From the NCBI GenBank assembly GCA_025786725.1, contig JAHLTZ010000012.1, positions 186,001-250,000 on the forward strand: 64,000 bases of DNA. The letters are read 5' to 3'. Position numbers and translations under genes: made by a program. Origin of the DNA: Syncephalis fuscata S228. Its lineage: Eukaryota > Fungi > Zoopagomycota. The notes under the pieces are model-generated. The model did not search any database and was not told where the DNA came from. It saw only the letters and a program-made list of their open reading frames with translations. Each line of letters starts with the position of its first letter. The stretch's first letter is position 1. Below are positions 1,225 to 26,403 of the stretch, piece after piece.

Positions 1225-1911
1225 ATTTACGCAATCACCATGATGATTAATAATTTATTGTGTTAATAGTCGTTTATAATAATATTGATGTATGTAATAG
1301 CATTATCTTTCCATAGAATAGATTAAGTGTAATAGAACATTGTATTAGTAACAATATTAAACACTTAAATAATAAATGTAACATACTATTTAATTTCATC
1401 AAAACATTTGAGATTGTTCAGTATTATTGTTGGCTATGCGTAGAAAGATTGATGGATACTAATAAAAGCCATTGATTGCAATTCCATATTGTTCCGCAGT
1501 TGTTATTGTTGTTACTATGTACAGTGTGGATTATTGCGTCTAAATGGCCTCTTCTATTTTCCAATCTTCTACTGTTGCATTTTAAGCATATTTGCGATGT
1601 AAGATAATTGTCTATGGTGACAAAAGGTAGGACGACTAGCATTTCTAATGTTCACCATTCTCTTGAGCATTCTTGATATCAACTTGGTAGGTGCAGGTTC
1701 ATTGCCAGCCATTGATAAAGCAAATAGCCTCCACCATATAAAATAAGAGAAATAAAACTAAGGATTGAATAATGTTTTTATTGATGTTTAAATACACATG
1801 TTATTTATATTGTTATATTCAACATTATCGGATAATATATTACTGAATAGAACAATAAGATAGTGATAAAAAGAAGAGTGAAATAAGTAAATAAAAATGT
1901 AGAAGTCAAAG
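1225..1911 (-). mobile_element. Non-autonomous Fanzor/TnpB-derived element (subfamily B), terminal hairpin missing
   Basis: Close inverted copy of 7284-7980. Encodes VTIDNYLTSQICLKC...NCGTIWN (RuvC-II/Zn-ribbon/RuvC-III-like). Left end reads CTTTGACTTCTACAT on the minus strand. Confidence 0.75.
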
Positions 1912-2047
1912 TACAGTAGAAACATTAAAGCCATTTAATCTCTCTTTCACTCTTACTTTCAGTGTATGTTATTGGACTTGTTTTCTTTCAATTGTTACTT
2001 TTTAACAACTAGCACTTCAGTTGCATACAACACTATCTATTTCCATC

Positions 2048-2633: not shown

Positions 2634-5600
2634 CTAGAATGCGACAAGTGTACGCAAATCTTCGAGTTTTTTTGTAATTTCATTCGGTGTGCGGTCTAAT
2701 TCCTCGGCTAGTGATTGTTTCTTGGCCGGTGGCAGTGCATTAAATGATTCACATAAATCGCCATCAATAACATTCTAATGAATTGCTGTATTAGTCTCTA
2801 GTCTACTGAACAGCAATAAATACTTACCTTGACTGGAATATAGGCACTACGATAGGCAACGTGATCACGGCCACATAGAGGCGATGCTTCATTACGCATA
2901 TGCATTTCCATCGTTTGGAAGAATTCAATATCGTCTCGTGATACAAATGGAATAAGTATGCCAACTGCACCACTCAGTGTTGTATATAGAATGATATCAC
3001 GGCCACCTGCCACAAGGGTCGCCTTTTCAATAGCCGTTACCGTGTCACCGATATGATATTGGTAAGATTTTGTAGTTTATGTGATGATCCATGTAGATAG
3101 CCTCGCTCATAGACTAACGATTACCGGTTGAATCATCTTCAACTTGTTCGCTGATATCACGCGGTAGTCGGTCAACAAATATATTACCAAACTTGTCGCC
3201 GGCAACCACTGTATCATAATCAACCATGGCTGTGGCTGTTGTGTATCGTGTGGTTGTATCATCAGCAAATATTGTTAGACGATTCTCCAATGGTAAATAA
3301 GTGACAAAATGGATGGATTCTTGTAGATCACCAACCACAATACGGTTGCCTTGTGTATGAAGTGTAACAATAGTGGTTGGAAATCCCTAATCATCCAATA
3401 GATTAGTGTTAAATAGTTAATTAAATAAATCAATCTTACCTTAGCCTCAGATTTACGTAATAATTTACGTTTACCCAAATCATAAATACGTAATGCATTG
3501 CCCACACCAACAAGTAATCGATTATGGAATGGAATCATCACTTGTGGAATATCATAATCTCCGTCTATATTTAATATGAATATTTTAGTAGACATTCATT
3601 AATATTGACTGTATTGATATCATACCTTATGCACGAATTCAAGTGATGTACCGTCTTCCGAGAATTTATACAAATGAATGTAACCTTTACGGCATCGTCG
3701 TGGTGATAGTGTAACATCTGCACCTGTACCTACTGCCAAATAGGTTATATCCGGTTGACTATGGAATACAATTGTGGATAGACTGTGATAGGACGAGTAA
3801 TTAGTAAAAGTAATAGACATTACACTACAACTTACCTAAATGCCGCTTCATTATTCGTTAGTTCTATCAATTGAAGGGTCTCGCCTTCAAATGGTGATAA
3901 CAATCGAATACAAGAGGCCCATTGACCGGATGGTGCCCGTAAATGATTAAATAGTTCCGGTGCTAGATCCAATACCTCTTGATCGACAATATCTCCTTCA
4001 GCCGACTAAATAGCATAGAGATTAAATTGAATCAATATAAATAAAATGTATTGTCGTTGTTATTGCTTACCTTCTCGGCGATAATACGCTCACGTTCAGC
4101 CGGTGAATAGACACCGTGTTCCGCCTCAATAACGACAAAGTTACGCGATGTAGGATGGACGGTAAAGTGTCGTGGTGTATAGCTTAGAGGAATTGACGCT
4201 TGATTAAATACATTGCCTAGTTTATCCAAGGCTAGAATACTAAAAAGCATATAAAAAACAAATATAGTCAATGTCGATTATATAAATGGCTATACTATCT
4301 ATTACCGAAGTGTATTATCGGCAATGGCTACAATACCATCGCCACCTTGACTGCCCGATACAAAACTTGAACCACATTCAAGTGCGGTGTATGAAATGGG
4401 CACAAGATGGGCCCGTGACTGAATGTATAACTAAGCCATGGTCGACTTGATAAAGCAAGTAGAGCCGACTCTCCTTGAACAATGACCGGAAATAGTTTAA
4501 CTGGACGTGAACCAAGGAATCTAGTAAATAATAATAATAATAATAATAATGTTTAATATAAATGTATATGGCTTATTATTGTTTCTTACCGAAGACGTGG
4601 ATCTGTCATTTCTCCCGTGTGATTATCAAGAACTGTACGTAATAATACACCATTGCGTAGACCAATAGCCAGGAATAATGAAGCATGACTACGATCAGAG
4701 GATCGATCCATCATAGTAATAATAACTAATGATTCTGGTTGGGCATTCAACGCCTATAATGACAGATTAATACAAAATATTAATACACCACTAGTTATAC
4801 ATCTAATGCTACTTACTTGAATGGCCAATTCTTCAAAGCAGCGATCAGGCTCAAGACTAAAGATACGCACTGTTTGATCATCACAGGCAACCGCCTAATT
4901 AAATCAATACATCAATAAATGGTTCATTAATAGTTCATTAACACTAACCAAGAACTGAAATCGGACTCGTCCATCGGGTACTTCACCCAAGGCCAAACCA
5001 AGAACATTGGCGCCTGTATTTAATCGTTCTTGATACTCGTTAAGTTGGCCGTGTTCATCAAGTTCAAAATAAACAAGTTCGCCAGTATTAAGTGCAACGA
5101 CAACCTGCCGATGATTAGCAGTGGCACGTACAATAAGTCGACCAGAAGGCGGCTTCCATTCATTCACGCGCTTATCGGCCAGAATATGACGCACACCCTC
5201 GGGATGAGCCTGAATCAGTGTATCCTCGCCCATTTGACGTATAAATAGTGTCGGTGTACTTGCTAGTAGTCCACTGTCCTGCACTTCCTCCACCGTTTCA
5301 CCAATCGACAATACAAGTGTGGCATTGACAAATGACACAACAATATAGGCATCGGCCTCGTCATCGGCCCGTAACTTTGTCGTCCAAATGGCTGTGGGCC
5401 GACCAGGTAACTCAGTGACGGCCACTTCAGATATCTCAAGACCATGTCGAAGAATACGCAACGATGAACGAGCACCACGACCACAAAGCGAGTATAATTG
5501 CGGTGTCTCTTCATCTGTCAAATTAATGACTTTTGTATCGATAAGTGGACACATACTGTCCATCTCGTCAACAAGTGCTAAATTAACCAATTCTCGTGGT

Positions 5601-7160
5601 TTAAAATACACGCGCGTCTCTTCACCATCGGCATAATCATGGCTTGAAAATACCAATTCGTCATCATCGTCACCTAATTGTTGAAATTGATAAAATTGAC
5701 TATCAACAGTTTAATTGTTAAAATAATTAGACGGGCTACTATTTCACTTACTGATTGCCCATATCAGCAGCTAGGAAAAGAAAACCTGATTTTAGAATAC
5801 CCATTGTATTGGCCATAGGTACTGTGTCAAAGTATTTAATACGAATATCGTTGACCTTGCCACCAGCATGATCAATCATAATCTTATAGATGTCACCTGC
5901 TTCACTTTGTGCTAGAATAAAGAATGTTCTCTATAATAGATCATTAACATTAAATAATATTGTTCTATTCTTATTTACCTTCATTTTATGGACTGTGGCT
6001 GTAATAATCATTAAACCACGGTCTGCATCTTCAAGTGGATTTTCACGGCGTGGAATTGGTACACGTCGTTGTTCCTCTCCATCATGCATATATGTAATCC
6101 AGTTCTCTGAACATACTAGGACACCAGATGGCCCATCACTACCTCCCGGCACTATATAGATCAATATAATAAATAGGATTATAATATAGAATAGACTATA
6201 ATGAGTATATATATATATATAAATGTAATGCAAGTCATGTATATTACCGGCAATAATTAGATTGGCTGTCATATCAACTGGTTCACTCCAACGACGTACA
6301 ACATGATTTAAACCAAGATCCAATTCATAGTAAGTAAGCATCTATTCACCTATTAGTTAATAAACAATTAAATCCGTCACTGTATAATTGCTATATACTT
6401 TTTCTGTCTCTGATAATGCCTCGCCTGTAGGATCCTCATCTGCATCTTGGTAATCAATTTCCAAACATGCAAATATTGGATTTTCATAGCCAACATCAAC
6501 ACCAATGCAGTCGTGTAGAATTGTATGCGATTTATGCGCCTCAAGTGGCGAGGAAATCGTCAAATTGGCTGCCGAGTCCCGATTCATAACGTAAACGAAT
6601 TTCTGTTTCTCCACCGCAGCTATTGCCATTAATATTGACATATAGTCGTATACACAATACGGTTAGTGGCCATAAATACAAAAATATTTACACTACCTAT
6701 CATAATCGCTCTTCCTTTAGGATCAGTGGCTAGATATTCACCTGGCACAACGCGTCTACAGCCTGATTTGCCATAAGTCTCCATATGGACGCGATCAAAC
6801 CGATTATGCTCGACATTGTACTCAAGCACAACAATACGACCGGAATCAGAGCCCACAACCAAATAATCTATAGCGTAACGCGGTATAACGAACAATTGGC
6901 ACTCTATTATGACGGCACTCTTTTGGCATGCTTACCTTTACTGCCACCCGTTAAACGGAACGGTTGAAGTGATCGCACAACGCCAAAAATATCTTGCGCC
7001 AAGCAACTCGTACTTTGCCGGTTTCGGCATTTGGTCGAAGTAGTTCTAGACGGGTACCGCGTGCCGCAATAATCTGTTGTTCACGCGTTCCAGTAAAGTT
7101 ACCGACCACCGCACAGGTAATTATGGTGGGTGGCTGCAGTGTAAGATTATAAAGATGCAT
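2634..7160 (-). CDS. RSE1: Pre-mRNA splicing factor Rse1/SF3B3 (multi-exon)
   Basis: [76 protein letters not shown]. Confidence 0.97.
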
Positions 7161-7283
7161 CGTGCTCGACTATATAGCCACAGAAGAAGAAGAGGAAGAA
7201 GAGGAAGAACACGCAAGAAAGAATAGGTAAGCGGAGGAAACCACTTGATCCAATGATATTAATTAATTAATGTTTCTACTATA

Positions 7284-8018
7284 CTTTGACTCTACATTTT
7301 TATTTACTCATTTCACTCTTCTTTTTATCACTATTTTATTGTTCTATTCAGTAATATATTATCCGATAATGTTGAATATAACAATATAAATAACATGTGT
7401 ATTCAGACATCAATAAAAACACTATTCAATCCTTAGTTTTTATTTCTCTTATTTTATATGGTGGAGGCTATTTGCTTTATCAATGGCTGGCAATGAACCT
7501 GCACCTACCAAGTTGATATCAAGAATGCTCAAGAGAATGGTGAACATTAGAAATGCTAGTCGTCCTACCTTTCTGTCACCATAGACAATTATTTTACATC
7601 GCAAATATGCCCAAAATGCAACGGTAGGATATTGGAAAATAGAAGAGGCCATTTAGACGCAATAATCCACACTGTACATAGTAACAACAATAACAACTGC
7701 GGAACAATATGGAATTGCAATCAATGGCTTTTATTAGTATCCATCAATCTTTCTACGCATAGCCAACAATAATACTGAGCAATCTCAAATGTTTTGATGA
7801 AATTAAATAGTATGTTACATTTATTATTTAAATGTTTAATATTGTTACTAAACAATGTTCTATTACACTTAATCTATTCTATGGAAAGGATAATGCTATT
7901 ACATTACATCAATATTTATTATAAACGACTATTTAAATACAAATAAATTATTTAAATTATCATGATTAATTGCGTAAAAATGTTTGCTGCTTTAAAACTC
8001 CAAATTTGGGAGTCAAAA
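7284..8018 (+). mobile_element. Non-autonomous Fanzor/TnpB-derived element (subfamily B) with inverted termini
   Basis: Left end CTTTGACTCTACAT; right end ACTCCAAATTTGGGAGTCAAA. Frameshifted coding remnant FALSMAGNEPAPTKLISRMLKR...VTIDNYFTSQICPKC...HTV...NCGTIWN at ~7460-7790. Confidence 0.75.
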
Positions 8019-8030
8019 AATAGAATTTAT

Positions 8031-9136
8031 TTAAGAAATGTTCATAACGATATCATACAACTTTTGATTTAATATAGGATCATTCATTTGATGAGGTACC
8101 ATAGATGCATGATTAGTATTGGGCTCATCTGATAATTGTTGCTGTTCTACTGACGATAGAGATTGATGACTATCAAAAGTATCTGTGGTAGTAATTGAAT
8201 GGGATACATTTGCATTGGACGATACAGTAATGGTTGGTGCTTGCAGTTGAACTTGCTCTATCATCTTGGTTAAAGATTGGCATTTTCTAGACAGTAAAAT
8301 TGTTGTTAATAACCGTAGAAATAGCGTATTATAATTCATAGTATAAAACTTACTCTAGTAGATCGCGTGTTGCTGCTTGTTTCCGTTCTATTTGATCTTG
8401 TAGCATAAGTTTCAGCGTTTCTTTTGCCTACTTATTGCACTTAATAAAAAACTACTTAGTAGAAAAATACGATAATTACCTGGATTGGACGATATTCGTT
8501 GATCAATGCATATATATTGTTAAGCAATAGTCGAAAATGGTCAATCTTTGTTGGATACTAAGTTAAAGGTGGATTATTGCTATTAACTCTACTATGTACT
8601 CATATCACTTAATAGTGTGACATACCTGGTCTGGACAACGTCGCAGGACATCAACCAATTCTACAAAGTTAAATACTAACGAGTGGTTAAGTCGTTTCAG
8701 TTCGTCCATACGTCTAGCTATGTTATAGAATCAATAGTCAATTTAACGCTGTTTATTAATAGTTTATTGCTAAATAGTGACGTACCATTGGGCGTGTCAC
8801 CATAAAGTTGGTCGATACCAGCGTCTTTTAGTGAAAATGGTTCGTCTACCACCTAAATGTTTTATATACTAAGATTCATCGGCAGTTGAATATATGCAAT
8901 AGCGTACTTACTGGCCATTGTTCGCCGAATAGATTATAAGTGCCGGTGGTAGGCGGGGTGGGTGGACGCAGTTGGGTGAATTCTACGGGCAAGCTTGCTT
9001 TCTCGTCTGAGCCCGATGAATCTACGTGTGTGTCGATCCATGCTTGGTAGGCAGTCAAACGCGACGACGTGAATGCTTCGTAGAACGGAGGTGGAGGAGG
9101 AAACGCGGCACTTAGGCGTGGTTGTTGCTCGGCCAT
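8031..9136 (-). CDS. MED7: Mediator subunit 7 (multi-exon)
   Basis: SAAFPPPPPFY, PPTPPTTGTYNLFGEQW, ELKRLNHSLVFNFVELVDVL, NIYALINEYRP, QAKETLKLMLQDQIE. Confidence 0.92.
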
Positions 9137-9460: not shown

Positions 9461-10717
9461 TTATTGATTGTTTGTTGGCTCAGAGTTCAAATAAGATACC
9501 GCAACATCTACACTACGAGATATAGCGTTGCGAATGTACTCTAAAACCATTTCACGATTACGTGGAGGAAGAGTTGGTGGTGCTTGCCCATTATTCGATG
9601 GATCGGTACGAGTATAACTTGGAGGAGGAGTTGATGGTGCTTGTCCATTGCTAGACGAATCGGTACGGGTATATTCTGGAGGTTGGTCGACATTGTTTGA
9701 AGTTCTAGCCTCGTATTCTGGCAATGGTTCAGGCTGTCCATCATAAGAGAATGCGAAAGGATGATATACAATATCTTGAACATTATGCATAGCTTGTTCG
9801 AGTTTTTCAGTCAAGATAGTATAACTCCATGGTCCTGTTTGTATACTTCCCCTGCGAGAGATACTAGCACCAACTCGTTCAGCATCACTATAGCCCGCAA
9901 TAATAGCATCGTTGTCCTTAGTAATGCATATATCTAATTAAACTGTTAAAACTGTGAAATACACTAGACTATAAAATAATAGCTTACTATCTATACTAGG
10001 ATCGATAGTCCATCCGGAACCAAATAGATACATCATACCTAATTACACTTGATTAGTCAATTGTTATTTATAACTAAATTACATACCCTGTAAAATTTTA
10101 GTAAACAAAGCTATAGAACGTCTATTTCTAAATTCAAAAGACTTGGCAGCAATAGTCTCAAAGTATTCTTTCATAGTTTTATCACAGTTCCTTGGAACAA
10201 CGTAGCAAATACCATTTTTTAAACGAAAATGACGTGTTGGACGTAGAACCATATCTTTGGCTTTATGAATACCACGATTGCTATTAGGCATGTTTTCAAG
10301 GTCCTGTTATAATAGCAATACATTTTTAGTGACTATAAAACCAATGAGGTAAAGTGAACCTACTTTGTATACACGCATACTCTTGTCCTCGTTGTCTTTT
10401 AAAGGATCGCCGCATACTATCGTGGCTGGTTTACCATAATACTGGCCTTGCGCTTGAATAAGCCTTTAGAAAAGCCAAATTGTGTCTCAATAGTAAGGTG
10501 CCACCGACCCAGACTCGATTCACCAGGCTTCATTTTGGCAAGATCGACTAGTGCGTAGCCTGTGCAGTAAAGTTAGTATGTTATTAAGTTAAATCAGACA
10601 GTATGCCTGTATACCTGAGCTTAATGATGGACTCAGTGCAGCAACATGCTGGATAGTTGGAGCCAATTCTAATGTGCAGAGTACTGCAATAATGTAATAT
10701 GCTTGTTTGAATATCAT
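9461..10717 (-). CDS. Secreted degenerate kinase-like protein with PY-motif tail, tandem copy 1
   Basis: Signal-like MIFKQAYYIIAVLCTLELAP; kinase-lobe-like segments (LFTKILQG|MMYLFGSGW..|ICITKDND); tail with LPEY, PPEY, PPPSY. One-base frameshift at ~10453 relative to copy 2. Confidence 0.6.
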
Positions 10718-11385
10718 AATAAATATCTATTGTTAATATAATAGTAACAATCGTTAAAAAAATTAATAAAAGTGGGCAGCGCAGTAAAAGCATGTTTCGC
10801 TTGTTATAGCTGAATGAATTTGCTATAAATCTTCAAAAAGCTATATACTCGAGGTAATGTACAAAACTGGTTAATAACACGTTATGAATGCTTTTTAAAG
10901 TAATAGAATATATATAAATAAACAAAAAATAACTTTTGCTTTTTAATTTAATGCAATATAAAGAAGTTTTCCAAATGAAACACCGATGCATGAATGGTTA
11001 TCTATTTTTGTAATTTATCAATAAGGTTATAATTAGACAAAATACATAAATGGTTTATCATGCAAACATGTGCTTATAATCTGAAATTCAACAAAAGCAA
11101 TGGTATATTGCTTTGTTAAAGTCTATTTAATGTTTAACGGCACGTTGGCTATGTCTTTTTAAATAAACAACCAAATTTTATAAATATAACGCTAAAAGCG
11201 TAGCGTGTTTAACTAAACCAAACTGAAATTTGTAAATTGTATAACTAATAGCAAAGAACAAAATTATTAATAAAGCATGGTTAATAAGACAGAGCTGTAT
11301 AAAATAGTAAACTGTTAACTGCTTTAAATAACAACAATAATAACTATATTTGCACAATAATATTATGATTTAAAATGGTTCGAGT

Positions 11386-12636
11386 TTATTGATTATTTGG
11401 CGGTTTAGAATTAGAAGATGACACGATATCCGTGTTACGAGATATGGCGTTACGAACAAATTCTGCAATTTGTTCATGATTACGGGGTGGAAGAGCTGGC
11501 GGTACTTGCCCATTATTAAATGAACCAGTACGAGTATAACTTGGAGGAGTTGATGATGTTCGTCCATTGCTAGAGGAATCGGTACGGGTATATTCTGGAG
11601 GTTGATCGACATTGCTCGAGAAAGTACCAGGCTCGTATTTTGGCAATGGTTCAGCATGTCCATCATAGAGAATGCGAAAGGATTATAAACAATATCTTGA
11701 ATATTATGCATAGCTTGCTCAAATAGGGCTTGCAAATCAGAATAATCCCACTCAAATGTTCTTAGTCGTCCGTCACTAGAGACCCTAGCGTCAAACCGTT
11801 TAGCATTGCTATATCCCGCAATAAGAACATCGTTGTTTTTAGTAATGCACATATCTAATCAAAATGTTAGAACTGTAAAATATGCTACACTATAAAATAG
11901 TAGCTTACTATCTATACTAGGATCGATAGTCCATCCGGAACCAATTAAATATATCAGGCCTAGTTACAAGTGATTAGTCGATTATAATTTACAATTATGT
12001 ACATACCCTCCATAACTTTTGTAAACAAAGCTATAGAACGTCTATTTCTAAATTCAAAAGACTTGGCAGCAATAGTCTCAAAGTATTCTTTCATAGTTTT
12101 ATCACAGTTCCTTGGAACAACGTAGCAAATACCATTTTTTAAACGAAAATGACGTGTTGGACGTAGAACCATATCTTTGGCTCTATGAATACCACGATTG
12201 CTATTAGGCATGTTTTCAAGGTCCTGTTATAATAGCAATACATTTTTAATGACTATAAAACCAATGAGGTAAAGTGAACCTACTTTGTATACACGCATAC
12301 TCTTGTCCTCGTTGTCTTTTAAAGGATCGCCGCATACTATCGTGGCTGGTTTACCATAATACTGGCCTTGCGCCTTGAATAAGCCTTTAGAAAAGCCAAA
12401 TTGTGTCTCAATAGTAAGGTGCCACCGACCCAGACTCGATTCACCAGGCTTCATTTTGGCAAGATCGACTAGTGCGTAGCCTGTGCAGTAAAGTTAGTAT
12501 GTATTAAGTTAAATCAGACAGTATGCCTGTATACCTGAGCTTAATGATGGACTCAGTGCAGCAACATGCTGGATAGTTGGAGCCAACTCTAATGTGCAGA
12601 GACTGCAATAATGTAATATGCTTGTTTGAATATCAT
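11386..12636 (-). CDS. Secreted degenerate kinase-like protein with PY-motif tail, tandem copy 2
   Basis: Paralogue of 9461-10717 at ~1919 bp offset with the same exon structure. One-base losses at ~12601 and ~11667 relative to copy 1. Confidence 0.6.
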
Positions 12637-13135
12637 AATAAAATATCTATTGTTAATATAATAGTAACAATCGTTAAAAGAAATTAATAAAAGTGGGCAG
12701 CGCAGTAAAAGCATGTTTCGCTTGTTATAACTAAATAAATTCGCCATATTTTTTTACAAAGCTATCTATTCGAGGTAATGTACAAATTTGGTTAACAACA
12801 TGTTACAGTTGCTCTTTAAAGAAGTAAGATAGATAAATATATTAATCACCACGTTTTGTCGTTTTGATCTAATTCTATATGTGGAAAATTTCCAAATAGA
12901 ATATCAATGCACAATTTGCAGTACTATTACGTATGTAAATATACTATTTTGTAAGTTTATCGGTAAAGTTATAATTAGACAAAGTGCATAAATGTTTTAT
13001 CGGCTAAGCACGTGCTTATAATCTCAAATTCACCAAACATAATGGTATGTTGCTTTGTTAAAATTTATTTAGTGCTTAACAAAACATTGCTCAAGTATAT
13101 AATTAGCAAAATGAAAAATGAAAAATAGCAGTTTA

Positions 13136-18365: not shown

Positions 18366-19216
18366 ATGGCTACTATCTCCAACTCCGCCAACAGCTCTAT
18401 TGCTGGCCGTACAAAAAGCTGTACTGCCAAGGACCATACTGTGAAGAGCAAGGAAGACGACCAAGTTGCAAATGACAAGGAAGTTGACCAAGCTTTGAAG
18501 AGCAACGAAGACGACCAAGTTGCAAATGACAAGGAAGTTGACCAAGCTTTGAAGAGCAACGAAGACGACCAAGTTGCAAATGACAAGAAAGTTGACCAAG
18601 CTTTGAAGAGCAACGAAGACGACCAAGTTGCAAACAACGAGGAAGTTGACCAAGCTTTGAAGAGCAAGGAAAACAACAGTTGTTCTTTTGATTTATCGCG
18701 TTCATCACGATCGATAGCGCAACCAGTATCACGCCGATCAGGCAAACAGGTAAGCAATATTACTGACACTAAGCTAACCTCTCTTCATGATAGAAACAAG
18801 GCGCCAGTGGCCAGACTGAAGGGCACACAGCAAGCCGTTTTACCCACTTGTGATCACAAAAACGTGTCACAACGCAAAAGATCACCACTTATAGGTAATA
18901 AAACACTTTTATTGGTTATAATAGCTAACAAACATACTTTATTGCTAGCAAAAGAAGAATACGAGAAAAAGCCCATATGCAAATGCATACTAAAACAAAT
19001 GGAGTCTAAAAGAATCATGCCACGACCTCCACCACGCAAATTTTCAAAATCAGAGGATATCCGCGTGTCAATGATGATACGTAGATTCGAGGAATTGATT
19101 GGTAAAAAATTAAATATCTTTAATATAATTTTATTTAAACACTTAAGCATTTAGCTCAACGGGAACGCAAACGACGCAGGGAAGAAGAAGAGTCCACTGC
19201 ACGCAAACGGCGATGA
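18366..19216 (+). CDS. Hypothetical protein with 18-aa tandem repeats (probably spliced)
   Basis: ATG at 18366; GT..AG intron candidates near 18750, 18895 and 19102; last exon AQRERKRRREEEESTARKRR*. Confidence 0.5.
18442..18671 (+). repeat. 54-bp coding minisatellite, ~4.2 copies
   Basis: Unit TGAAGAGCAACGAAGACGACCAAGTTGCAAATGACAAGGAAGTTGACCAAGCTT, encoding KSNEDDQVANDKEVDQAL. Confidence 0.95.
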
Positions 19217-23564: not shown

Positions 23565-24040
23565 GAATTAGCATAAGAATATAAGTTTAAACAATAATAG
23601 ATGTATGAAGTTTATCGTATAAATAAATGGCTGTCAATTCAAAGAATATATAGATCATTATTGTTGATCAATAGTCTGTAGCAAGCGGTGATATTATAAA
23701 TATCAAGTAACTGTGAATAAAATTAAACGTGATATCATTTGAATGGTGATGACTTTTGACAGCTAATAGTTAAATAATAAAAGTTAATCATTTGAGCAAC
23801 TATTTATATTGCTATTCCTGCACTACAATACACTAATATTATATAATATGTAAATATAGCACAAGATGCACAACAAATTAATTTATGCTTTTTGTACATA
23901 AATTATGTCGATTAATAGCTACTTACCAATATTTACATCAAGCATGAGATGCAATAGAAATAGAACTTGCTAGTATCAGCCGTATACTTATTAATGGAAA
24001 ATATAGTTAACAATGGCTTAGATTATTATTAATCCTGGGA

Positions 24041-24810
24041 CTGGCTTGTACTTTGACCCCCACATTTGGAGTCCCCAAAGCAGCAAACCATTTTACGCAA
24101 TTGATTGTAGTGATTTAAATAGTTGATTGGATTGATTGGATTGATTTGTGTTCAAATGATTATTCACAATAAATATTTACGTAATATAATAACAGTATCA
24201 TTTCCATAAAGTAGAATAGAATTAAATGTAATAGGACATTGTATTAGTAACAATTCTAAGTATTTAAATAAAACTTACATTCAATATCTAAAAAGTTTTA
24301 TTGAGACAAACATGCGTTCTCTGCGGTGCTTGTGTTGGTTTGAGATGGTCTGGCAAACTCAGCTGGTCTGCCATTTCCATCCCAGATTGATTCGATGATT
24401 TGAAAAATATTTTTGCTTGCCATGACATACCGATTACACACCACTTGGCAGTTTTGGCAGACTAAGGTGGTGTGGTGGGTATGACCATTTACAGCAATCT
24501 TTTCTATCAGACTTTTTTCCTTACAGACATGACAAATCTATTAAATTGTTAAATTGTTAAATAAAATAGTGATTACATTAAATACTTACCTGAGAAGAAA
24601 GATATTTATCGATTTTAATGGCAACAAGGTCTGCACGACGCTCTCGTCGTTTCAACATTTGCCAGCACCTGTTGACAACAGCAGATCGATGGCCCTTGTA
24701 TACATTGTTCTGCTTGCCAAACATTGCATCGCCGAATACAATAAGTGGCATTTTGTCAGTTGTTTGTAACCTTGCTGGATGTCATCCTTCTTTCTCTCTT
24801 GGTGGATCAC
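24041..24810 (-). mobile_element. Fanzor-bearing element remnant (subfamily A): 3' coding part, 3' non-coding module and terminal hairpin
   Basis: Terminus CTTTGACCCCCACATTTGGAGTCCCCAAAGCAGCAAAC at 24051; 24051-24270 aligns with the reverse complement of 7830-8018. Confidence 0.8.
24298..24751 (-). pseudogene. Intron-containing Fanzor (TnpB-like RuvC/Zn-finger) C-terminal fragment
   Basis: Exons 24751-24590 and 24537-24298 joined across a 52-nt GTAAGT..TAG intron give MPLIVFGDAMFG..KGHRS..LVAIKIDKYLSSQ|ICHVC..HTTLVCQNCQVVCNRYVMASKNI..GNGRPAEFAR*. An in-frame TGA lies just upstream. Confidence 0.85.
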
Positions 24811-25211
24811 TATTTAATTATATATAAATAATTATTCATACTTTACAGCTTTTAAAAAGTGTAGTCATAAAATATAATTATTATGGCTATACAGTTCTTT
24901 GTATTATAAAAATCCAGAATTTACCTACTAAATGTTCCAAGTGTTGATATGGCATTACATAGAAAACACTATATAAGAAGACATCAAATATTATCAATAA
25001 AATATTTAAGCTTTTTTCAATCCCTAACTGCCTTGACTACCCTGACCAGTTCTTAAATTAATGTAATTACTATTTTTATTGCATAAACGTAACAAATTAC
25101 AACAAAAGTAATCTTTATTATATTTATTTTATTAACTTAACATTAATTTTATCGAAAATGCCAAATAAATTGCTTATTTTTATCACACTTTTTGTTTTCA
25201 CTTGATATTGA

Positions 25212-25974
25212 AAGTTTGGTTGAACTGTACTTTGAATCCCACTTTTTTTATTTACTCACTTCACCATCTTTTCTTATTACTATATTATTGTTTTATTTGA
25301 TAATATATTATATGATAATGTTGAATATAACAATATAAATAGTATGCGTATTTGAACATCAATAAAAAACATTATTCAATTCCTGGTCTTTATTTTTCTT
25401 ATTTTATATCAACACCTGTTCAAGTAGCCTCAACGGCATGCCTTATATTCTGGTTACAACTGTCATCACAAGATCTTTCTGGTGAAAACACTCAGCCAAT
25501 TATTATCGCATATGGTGGAGACCATTTGCTTTATCGATGGTTGGCAAATAAATTGCACCCACCAAGTTGATACCAAGAATGCTCAAGACAATGGTGAACA
25601 TTAAAAATGCTAGTCGTCCTACCTTTTTGTCACTATAAACAAGTATCTTACATTGCAGATATGCCTAAAATACAACAGTAGAAAATTAGAAAATAGAAGA
25701 GGCCATTCAGACGCAAAGAAACCACACTGTACGTAGTAATAACAATAACAAATGCTGAATGACATGGAATCACGATTATATGGCTTTTATTAATATTCAA
25801 TCAATCTTTCTACGCATGGCCAACAGTAATAATGATCGGTCTCATGAATTTCAAGTAATCAAATGAAAACACTATACTTGTGTTTTGTTATGCATAACAG
25901 TATGACTTCAATTGAAACGAATTTTGCTTTGAGAACTCCAAATGTGAGAGTCAAAGTTCAGTTCAGCCAATCTT
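25212..25974 (+). mobile_element. Non-autonomous Fanzor-derived element (subfamily B) with ~30-bp imperfect TIRs
   Basis: Left end AAGTTTGGTTGAACTGTACTTTGAATCCCAC versus right-end reverse complement AAGATTGGCTGAACTGAACTTTGACTCTCAC. Remnant PIIIAYGG...C*MTWNHDYMAFINIQSIFLRMANSNNDRSHEF. Confidence 0.8.
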
Positions 25975-26403
25975 GGTTATCTGGATTAAATAGTTTAGAA
26001 ATTACTGATTTGGCACTTATATTGTAGTCAATTATTATAATATAAAAACAGAAATCAATGCTTTATTGATATTAGCATTGTCCAAATAAAGCCAATGCGT
26101 TTATTAAATAGGCAGTACCATGTGAATGGGAAGCATGTTGAACTCAAACATAGCGTCACCTCCTTATTCTAGAATAATTTTATTTACTTTTTAATGTTTT
26201 GATCAAGTAAAATATCTTTTATTGGAGGTCACGAGTCAGCGGATATTATAAATGCTATATATATATAGCAAAGAACAGTTTGCTATAAACCAAGTCAGCT
26301 GCTTTTCGACTCTCCATAAACCATATCCCGCAATTATATCCTCCTCTCTACCACCACATCGCAAACGATACCTCGGCTATACACAATTTACGATTTTATC
26401 ACA

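Follow-up and report, generated by a model that had tools for sequence, protein, structure and literature searches.

The noncoding block of ~230 bases that follows a broken Fanzor gene in the DNA studied here is probably the common right-hand end of an old, multicopy family of decayed Mutator-like transposons with broken Fanzor tails. We favor the view that it is the right-end cassette of a decayed cut-and-paste family, which looks conserved because its copies go back to one recent source and not because of selection. The cassette would consist of the 3′ untranslated or subterminal region plus a terminal inverted repeat (TIR) of ~25 bp. The family, Mutator/MuDR-like and with 9-bp target site duplications (TSDs), would once have had a Mucorales-type fungus as its host and Fanzor1 genes as its cargo. 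Chimeras and internally deleted derivatives that kept the right end would then have amplified to roughly 200 copies, of which some keep a C-terminal stump from one or another Fanzor lineage and others keep none, and one recent source may have passed the block to all copies as elements with matching ends recombined or switched templates. An origin as an omegaRNA is plausible for the terminal part only, as a fossil; present-day RNA-guided activity is very unlikely.

Extent of the block and its copies

In the window (the whole 64,000-nt stretch of DNA that was analyzed), the block runs on the minus (Fanzor) strand from the stop codon of an A-type Fanzor relic to the element end at 24043, where the A-type element terminates in ...GTCAAAGTACAAGCC (Table 1). 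With the A copy (24830-24040, minus) as the query, blastn against the window found matches at 7824-8017 (72.7% over 220 nt; E, 6e-31) and at 1372-1281 (80% over 100 nt) and none between coding parts. The sequence-only reading had described the A copy and the remnants of a second Fanzor subfamily, B, as sharing this block, and the motif string that it quoted is present. It had also called the two coding remnants unalignable, and in BLASTP the A and B relic proteins gave no alignment (E, 14). Other details had to be revised. First, the A-type element ends not at 24051 but at 24043, as judged from the alignment of copy termini. Second, the shared block does not stop at 24297 but begins further upstream, with a small hairpin over the stop codon, at ~24307. 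Third, the copy placed at 1225-1370 does contain the shared block but is no independent instance of it, being an inverted 95.7% duplicate of 7267-7978 that is truncated before the terminus. Finally, the copy at 25212, said to have a different and shorter 3′ region, is indeed shorter but not wholly different, as its last ~45 nt, the hairpin and TIR, are shared.

Table 1 Features of the block family in the window (position 1 is the first base of the window)
Feature	Position	Strand	Remarks
Right TIR of the A-type element	24043-24067	-	Termini of 41 to 57 copies align up to ...AAAGTA..(A/G)CC, then diverge
Flank where the 9-bp TSD of the A-type element would sit	24034-24042		Adjoins element end 24043
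Inner inverted TIR copy	24068-24084	-	Right-end specific; pairs with the TIR into a G·U-containing hairpin on the Fanzor-sense strand (long-loop variant)
Candidate hairpin H1	24080-24098	-	7 bp, 1-nt bulge, 4-nt loop; 94% of cells paired (41 copies)
AU-rich core of the shared module	24099-24272	-	Contains two ATTTAAAT palindromes and recurrent CAATC/GATTG words
Upstream extension of the shared block	24273-24307	-	Small hairpin over the stop codon (decayed in the A copy) and a GTAAGT word
Subfamily-A Fanzor C-terminal relic	24298-24751	-	Exon 24590-24751, GT..AG intron 24538-24589 (52 nt), exon 24301-24537, stop codon 24298-24300
B-type mini-element, ~750 bp	7272-8030	+	Comprises a left TIR, a decayed Fanzor tail at 7560-7769, the shared module at 7824-8017, and a degenerate right end
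Inverted B mini-element duplicate (95.7%)	1226-1928	-	Truncated within the module
B-type mini-element with short 3′ variant	25218-25968	+	Lacks the central ~170 nt of the module; terminal hairpin and TIR kept; head-to-head with the A copy

The B mini-elements at 1226-1928 and 7267-7978 are inverted duplicates (95.7 to 100%) that flank ~5.3 kb of host genes, including an SF3B3/RSE1-like gene. Their similarity far exceeds that among other family members and points to a segmental inversion or duplication, not to two insertions. At 24043-25968, the A relic (minus) and the short-variant B mini-element (plus) form a 1.9-kb unit with a right end on both sides, and the 9-nt flanks of this unit differ (CCTGGGACT versus AATCTTGGT). 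The A-type left boundary adjoins the terminus of another element also in L029 and C351.

The block recurs throughout the 29.4-Mb genome far beyond chance: 41 of 196 candidates were scored in one search and 40 of 182 in another, and 57 copies of ~190 candidates were aligned. At least five upstream contexts precede it, including Fanzor-less "ghost" copies. In context A, an A-type Fanzor tail lies upstream of the block. Context B, the majority, has a B-type tail and consists mostly of ~750-bp mini-elements; context C has only the last ~70 nt in common with A; and context D (L023 and L028) has no Fanzor remnant at all. In further deletion variants, other sequence is joined to the middle of the block. 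The upstream extension is homologous in the A, C, and D contexts, and the B version is more diverged. By this sequence comparison, the shared block truly begins, on its 5′ side, at the predicted stop-codon hairpin.

Transposon class

The transposon class that hosts the Fanzor relics is settled: the elements have TIRs and 9-bp TSDs and are Mutator-like. The right ends of all aligned copies match up to ...AAAGTA....(A/G)CC and diverge beyond it, and the left ends of the mini-elements, GG(A/T)GCTACTGTACTTTGAC..., mirror the right ends, ...GTCAAAGTA....CC, in inverse orientation, as TIRs do. A 9-bp TSD was found in L030, with ATTTAGTTG on both sides (9/9); a flush duplication in L027 matched at 7/9 positions and a decayed one in L046 at 6/9, with transitions, and the remaining copies were too decayed to score. 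The nearest proteins came from Parasitella, Rhizopus, Rhizomucor, and Backusella, all Mucorales. Fanzor1 elements that have MuDR-like TIRs and 9-bp TSDs but lack a transposase were reported from Rhizopus, Phycomyces, and Mucor by Bao and Jurka (PMC3627910). The family studied here resembles these Mucorales elements in that Fanzor1 is carried by TIR elements that lack a transposase of their own and make 9-bp TSDs, and chimeric families with one common end also occur among them (MCi-2 and PPa). The elements of PMC3627910 have full-length Fanzor genes, whereas only C-terminal stumps were found here, and the likeness is one of description.

No inverse similarity between left and right ends was found beyond the ~25-bp TIR. 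This means that the block is specific to the right end, and a long TIR was ruled out. An asymmetric transposase site and a Fanzor-related function would agree equally well with such specificity. Fifteen matches to the MULE domain PF10551 were present in the genome, and the termini of the one family examined differed from those of the block family. At G000:C351, the module lies 0.4 kb downstream of a MULE/SWIM transposase and was considered as the 3′ end of an autonomous MULE; this was rejected, as the element there is bounded by ~210-bp TIRs and a 9-bp TSD (TAAATTTTA) of its own and was inserted separately, in a nested position.

Identity of the block within and between contexts

The age of the block was judged from the identity of the module core, taken as the mean over 166 alignment columns. 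Within contexts, the values were 0.834, 0.857, and 0.871 for A-A, B-B, and C-C, respectively, compared to 0.838, 0.838, and 0.850 for A-B, A-C, and B-C. Equal identity within and between contexts points to one recent origin of the block. In context B, the coding relic and the left end were as similar between copies as the module, which means that the ancestor of the module across contexts is much more recent than that of the coding parts. Had selection on an RNA kept the block alike, near-100% conservation of 165 AU-rich nucleotides would have been needed while the coding sequences diverged beyond alignment; with recombination or template switching between elements that have the same ends, such near-perfect conservation is not needed.

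The copies diverged from the consensus by 10.3%, the transition/transversion ratio in the module core was 3.4 (transition-dominated decay), and G/C sites had changed two to three times as often as A/T sites. Conservation was flat along the block, at 0.83 to 0.95 per 20-nt window, and dropped only in the last 30 to 40 nt, which were the least conserved. This flat, transition-rich decay fits a single recent source followed by independent neutral decay and does not fit long-term selection. More generally, a noncoding block common to divergent coding remnants can mean a recently shared transposon end, not selection.

Fanzor relics and transcripts

The A and B coding relics each weakly matched PF07282, the Cas12f1-like TNB domain, with E values of about 1e-3 (6.6e-4 for A), below the Pfam cutoff. 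In Fanzors, the RuvC-II glutamate precedes the first CxxC by six residues, and the second CxxC is followed by an aspartate (PMC10711439). In the A copy, K stands in place of the glutamate and Y in place of the aspartate; in the B copy, N stands in place of the glutamate and the aspartate motif is lost. Thus, both window copies have lost catalytic residues of the RuvC triad, and the scored matches elsewhere in the genome were C-terminal only. An 863-amino-acid Fanzor-like protein of Rhizomucor matched the genome with only its last 130 residues (53 of 360 candidates scored), and a profile of three proteins did so with only its last ~170 (53 of 643 candidates scored). Residues 250 to 730 of the Rhizomucor protein gave zero matches at E values of ≤1, a result that holds for the query used, and the fetched flanks of the copies contained no N-terminal Fanzor matches. 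A search of the genome with PF01385, a model not expected to detect Fanzors, returned nothing.

In one poly(A)-type spliced transcriptome assembly, RNA contigs had a depth of 0 over positions 24100-24299; small RNAs and RNA ends are invisible to such contigs. The neighboring genes were covered and spliced in the same assembly. Over positions 25100-26099, contigs from other loci covered the B-type mini-element at high summed depth and ran into unrelated flanks at both ends, which indicates that B-type relics are transcribed within longer RNAs.

RNA fold and covariation

The family consensus had no excess stability over dinucleotide shuffles (z, +0.27 sense and -0.72 antisense). RNAalifold gave no structure with 57 copies (0.0 kcal/mol), and with 32 copies it gave -1.6 kcal/mol for the sense strand and -2.5 kcal/mol for the antisense strand. 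The last 110 nt of the consensus had z scores of -0.6 sense and -0.34 antisense, and the terminal 50 to 75 nt had scores of -0.5 to -1.1, no better than antisense. Among single copies, the z score was -2.15 sense and +0.87 antisense for A and -1.2 for B. The last 75 nt of the A copy folded at -16.2 kcal/mol sense versus -9.2 kcal/mol antisense (z, -0.85 and +0.62, respectively), and the last 85 nt of the short variant had z scores of -2.42 sense versus 0.03 antisense. The long-loop form of the terminal hairpin was more stable on the sense strand; in most copies, the loop is 16 nt shorter. The block had no relevant match in Rfam 15 at E values of ≤10.

Two small stems, the 7-bp H1 and a 4-bp CUUU/AAAG stem, lie within ~50 nt of the element end, and in long-loop copies the latter is lengthened by pairing of the inner inverted copy with the TIR. 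One pair of H1 was UA in 21, UG in 17, and CG in 3 of the 41 copies and was unpaired in none. H1 and the full H2 stem share bases and therefore compete. The sequence-only reading had proposed aligning the genomic copies and testing them for covariation, and this gave a mixed outcome: a shuffle-based score was above all 500 shuffles, a measure that is inflated by the relatedness of the copies, and two stricter measures for the two small stems were not significant. As the copies are dead and star-like, covariation is not expected, and such tests cannot decide the matter; the same caution applies to other dead repeats of this kind.

The stop-codon hairpin (24295-24307, minus) was found as GTCTC/GAGAC in L005 and L015, TTTC/GAAA in B, and TCTC/GAGA in L023, and a CTC/GAG stem is a further form of it (L005, L015, L023, L007, and B copies compared). 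The contexts thus differ by C-G to U-A changes. These compensatory changes and the sense-strand terminal hairpin are hints, not proof. Two other candidates were rejected. A long-range stem, CAATCAA/TTGATTG, had uncompensated changes in its 3′ arm, and an intron in the block was dismissed since the GTAAGT/GTATGT and TACTAAT words have no 3′ AG nearby, introns here being 49 to 71 nt long. The dinucleotide AG occurred once in the 190-nt sense module consensus, compared to 5.9 expected (P, 0.004 uncorrected; not significant after correction for 16 dinucleotides), and UG was enriched.

Comparison with known omegaRNAs and alternative explanations

In TnpB systems of the IS200/IS605 and IS607 types, the gene for the guide RNA (omegaRNA or reRNA) extends from within the 3′ end of the nuclease gene to the right end of the transposon. 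The block is alike in position, extending from the 3′ side of the nuclease to the right end on the Fanzor strand. However, IS200/IS605 and IS607 elements lack TIRs and TSDs and have strongly structured scaffolds, unlike the block family. We infer the role of the block in the active family; an omegaRNA scaffold would, by a slight preference, have occupied the last ~50 to 110 nt and reached the TIR, as in every characterized Fanzor1.

It is possible, though we hold this only tentatively, that just these last ~50 to 110 nt (H1, the CUUU/AAAG stem, and the TIR) are a fossil omegaRNA scaffold and that the AU-rich ~170 nt upstream were a 3′ untranslated region, a terminator, or a spacer. Fanzor1 omegaRNAs are 75 to 150 nt long, and the minimal scaffold of PpFz1 from Parasitella parasitica, which belongs to the closest characterized host group (Mucorales, by the nearest proteins), has two stem-loops (7 and 4 bp) within ~50 nt beside the guide (Xu et al. 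2024, PMC11423790). The candidate H1 and H2 stems could mimic this arrangement, but stem order and composition differ, and comparison by eye with the PpFz1 and SpuFz1 omegaRNAs (PMC11423790, Table S3) showed no similarity. The pairing of H1 across 41 copies and the short 3′ variant, which keeps just the terminal part and is stable on the sense strand only, point toward such a fossil; the modest z scores of the consensus terminus with antisense as good, the competition between H1 and H2, the stricter covariation measures, and the poor conservation of the terminal 30 to 40 nt point against it. If the terminal part is an omegaRNA, this would be a Mucorales family whose guide RNA cassettes outlived their nucleases by hundreds of copies, and 3′ cassettes would have been shown to move between Fanzor lineages.

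It is unlikely that the whole block (~230 to 290 nt, stop-codon hairpin through TIR) is one AU-rich omegaRNA scaffold of unusual length that selection kept almost unchanged in several Fanzor lineages, with its guide taken from the flank beyond 24043. It lies exactly where Fanzor and TnpB omegaRNAs lie, it is specific to the right end, it has hairpins at both ends with some compensatory changes, and its A copy folds better on the sense strand. A precedent is found in Spizellomyces punctatus, in which Fanzor loci and 134 ghost loci without an open reading frame have in common a 75-nt omegaRNA region that takes in the right inverted repeat (PMC10432273). The likeness to SpuFz1 and "ghost Spu-1" (Saito et al. 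2023, PMC10432273) is that a noncoding stretch from the stop codon to the right inverted repeat occurs in both Fanzor-bearing and ORF-less elements. Three differences stand against this likeness. First, the SpuFz1 omegaRNA is GC-rich and structured, whereas the block is ~230 nt long, AU-rich, and without excess fold. Second, the SpuFz1 omegaRNA was detected by small-RNA sequencing, extends 14 to 15 nt past the element end, and binds an intact nuclease, whereas neither a transcript contig at the locus nor an intact nuclease was found for the block. Third, the S. punctatus elements have putative TA duplications, in contrast to the 9-bp TSDs here. The extent of the block also exceeds that of the known Fanzor1 omegaRNAs, no similarity to it was found downstream of the Fanzor genes of Rhizomucor pusillus and Parasitella parasitica, and the identity values, the consensus fold, the lack of a transcript contig at the locus, and the lack of an intact nuclease all argue against a scaffold of this length.

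A related version, in which the full block (~230 to 290 nt, AU-rich, and weakly structured) is an omegaRNA cassette swapped between Fanzor1 lineages and the ghosts are guide-only parasites of the nuclease, appears more doubtful still. If true, it would be the longest and least structured Fanzor1 guide RNA known and a case of modular guide RNA swapping. An independent MITE inserted into the 3′ region of several Fanzor elements is highly improbable: the sharp 5′ boundary of the blast matches and the short variant without ~170 nt would suit it, but the block has no inverted termini or flanking duplication of its own, which ruled out a nested MITE, it always runs into the TIR of the host element in one orientation, and the partial copies L062, L063, and L068 hold only its 3′ part.

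The recently shared transposon end that we prefer agrees with one of the two options that the sequence-only reading had offered: the 3′ end swapped between families, or shared by them, stood up and the selected scaffold did not. Its proposal of an omegaRNA was borne out in position and not in conserved fold, transcript contig, or intact nuclease. It had itself held that the absence of both a fold and a transcript would speak against an omegaRNA, and this is largely what was found, with the reservation that a poly(A)-type assembly cannot exclude a small RNA and that dead copies cannot covary.

Other repeats

Three kinds of repeats were noted beside the block family. First, L044 (reverse complement, 4000-8246), L045, and L043 are decayed repeats of >4 kb that embed a B unit and in which other conserved sequence replaces the outer left TIR; they contained no open reading frame of >100 amino acids. 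Second, a 2.42-kb Mutator-like element was found in L028 and L089 (G000:C351:12202-17114), where it is nested in a Fanzor-less ghost copy, and also in L088, L090, and L091. Its ~210-bp TIRs are 92% alike, MULE, Transposase_mut, and SWIM domains are present in open segments, and at least four copies are 93 to 99% alike; judged by its sequence, it may be a recently active autonomous MULE. Third, the window contains a tandem duplication at 9493-13089 with a 1.92-kb period and 75 to 100% identity by segment, and a tandem array at 18378-18701 with a 27-nt period, in which eight overlapping 108-nt repeat copies were found.
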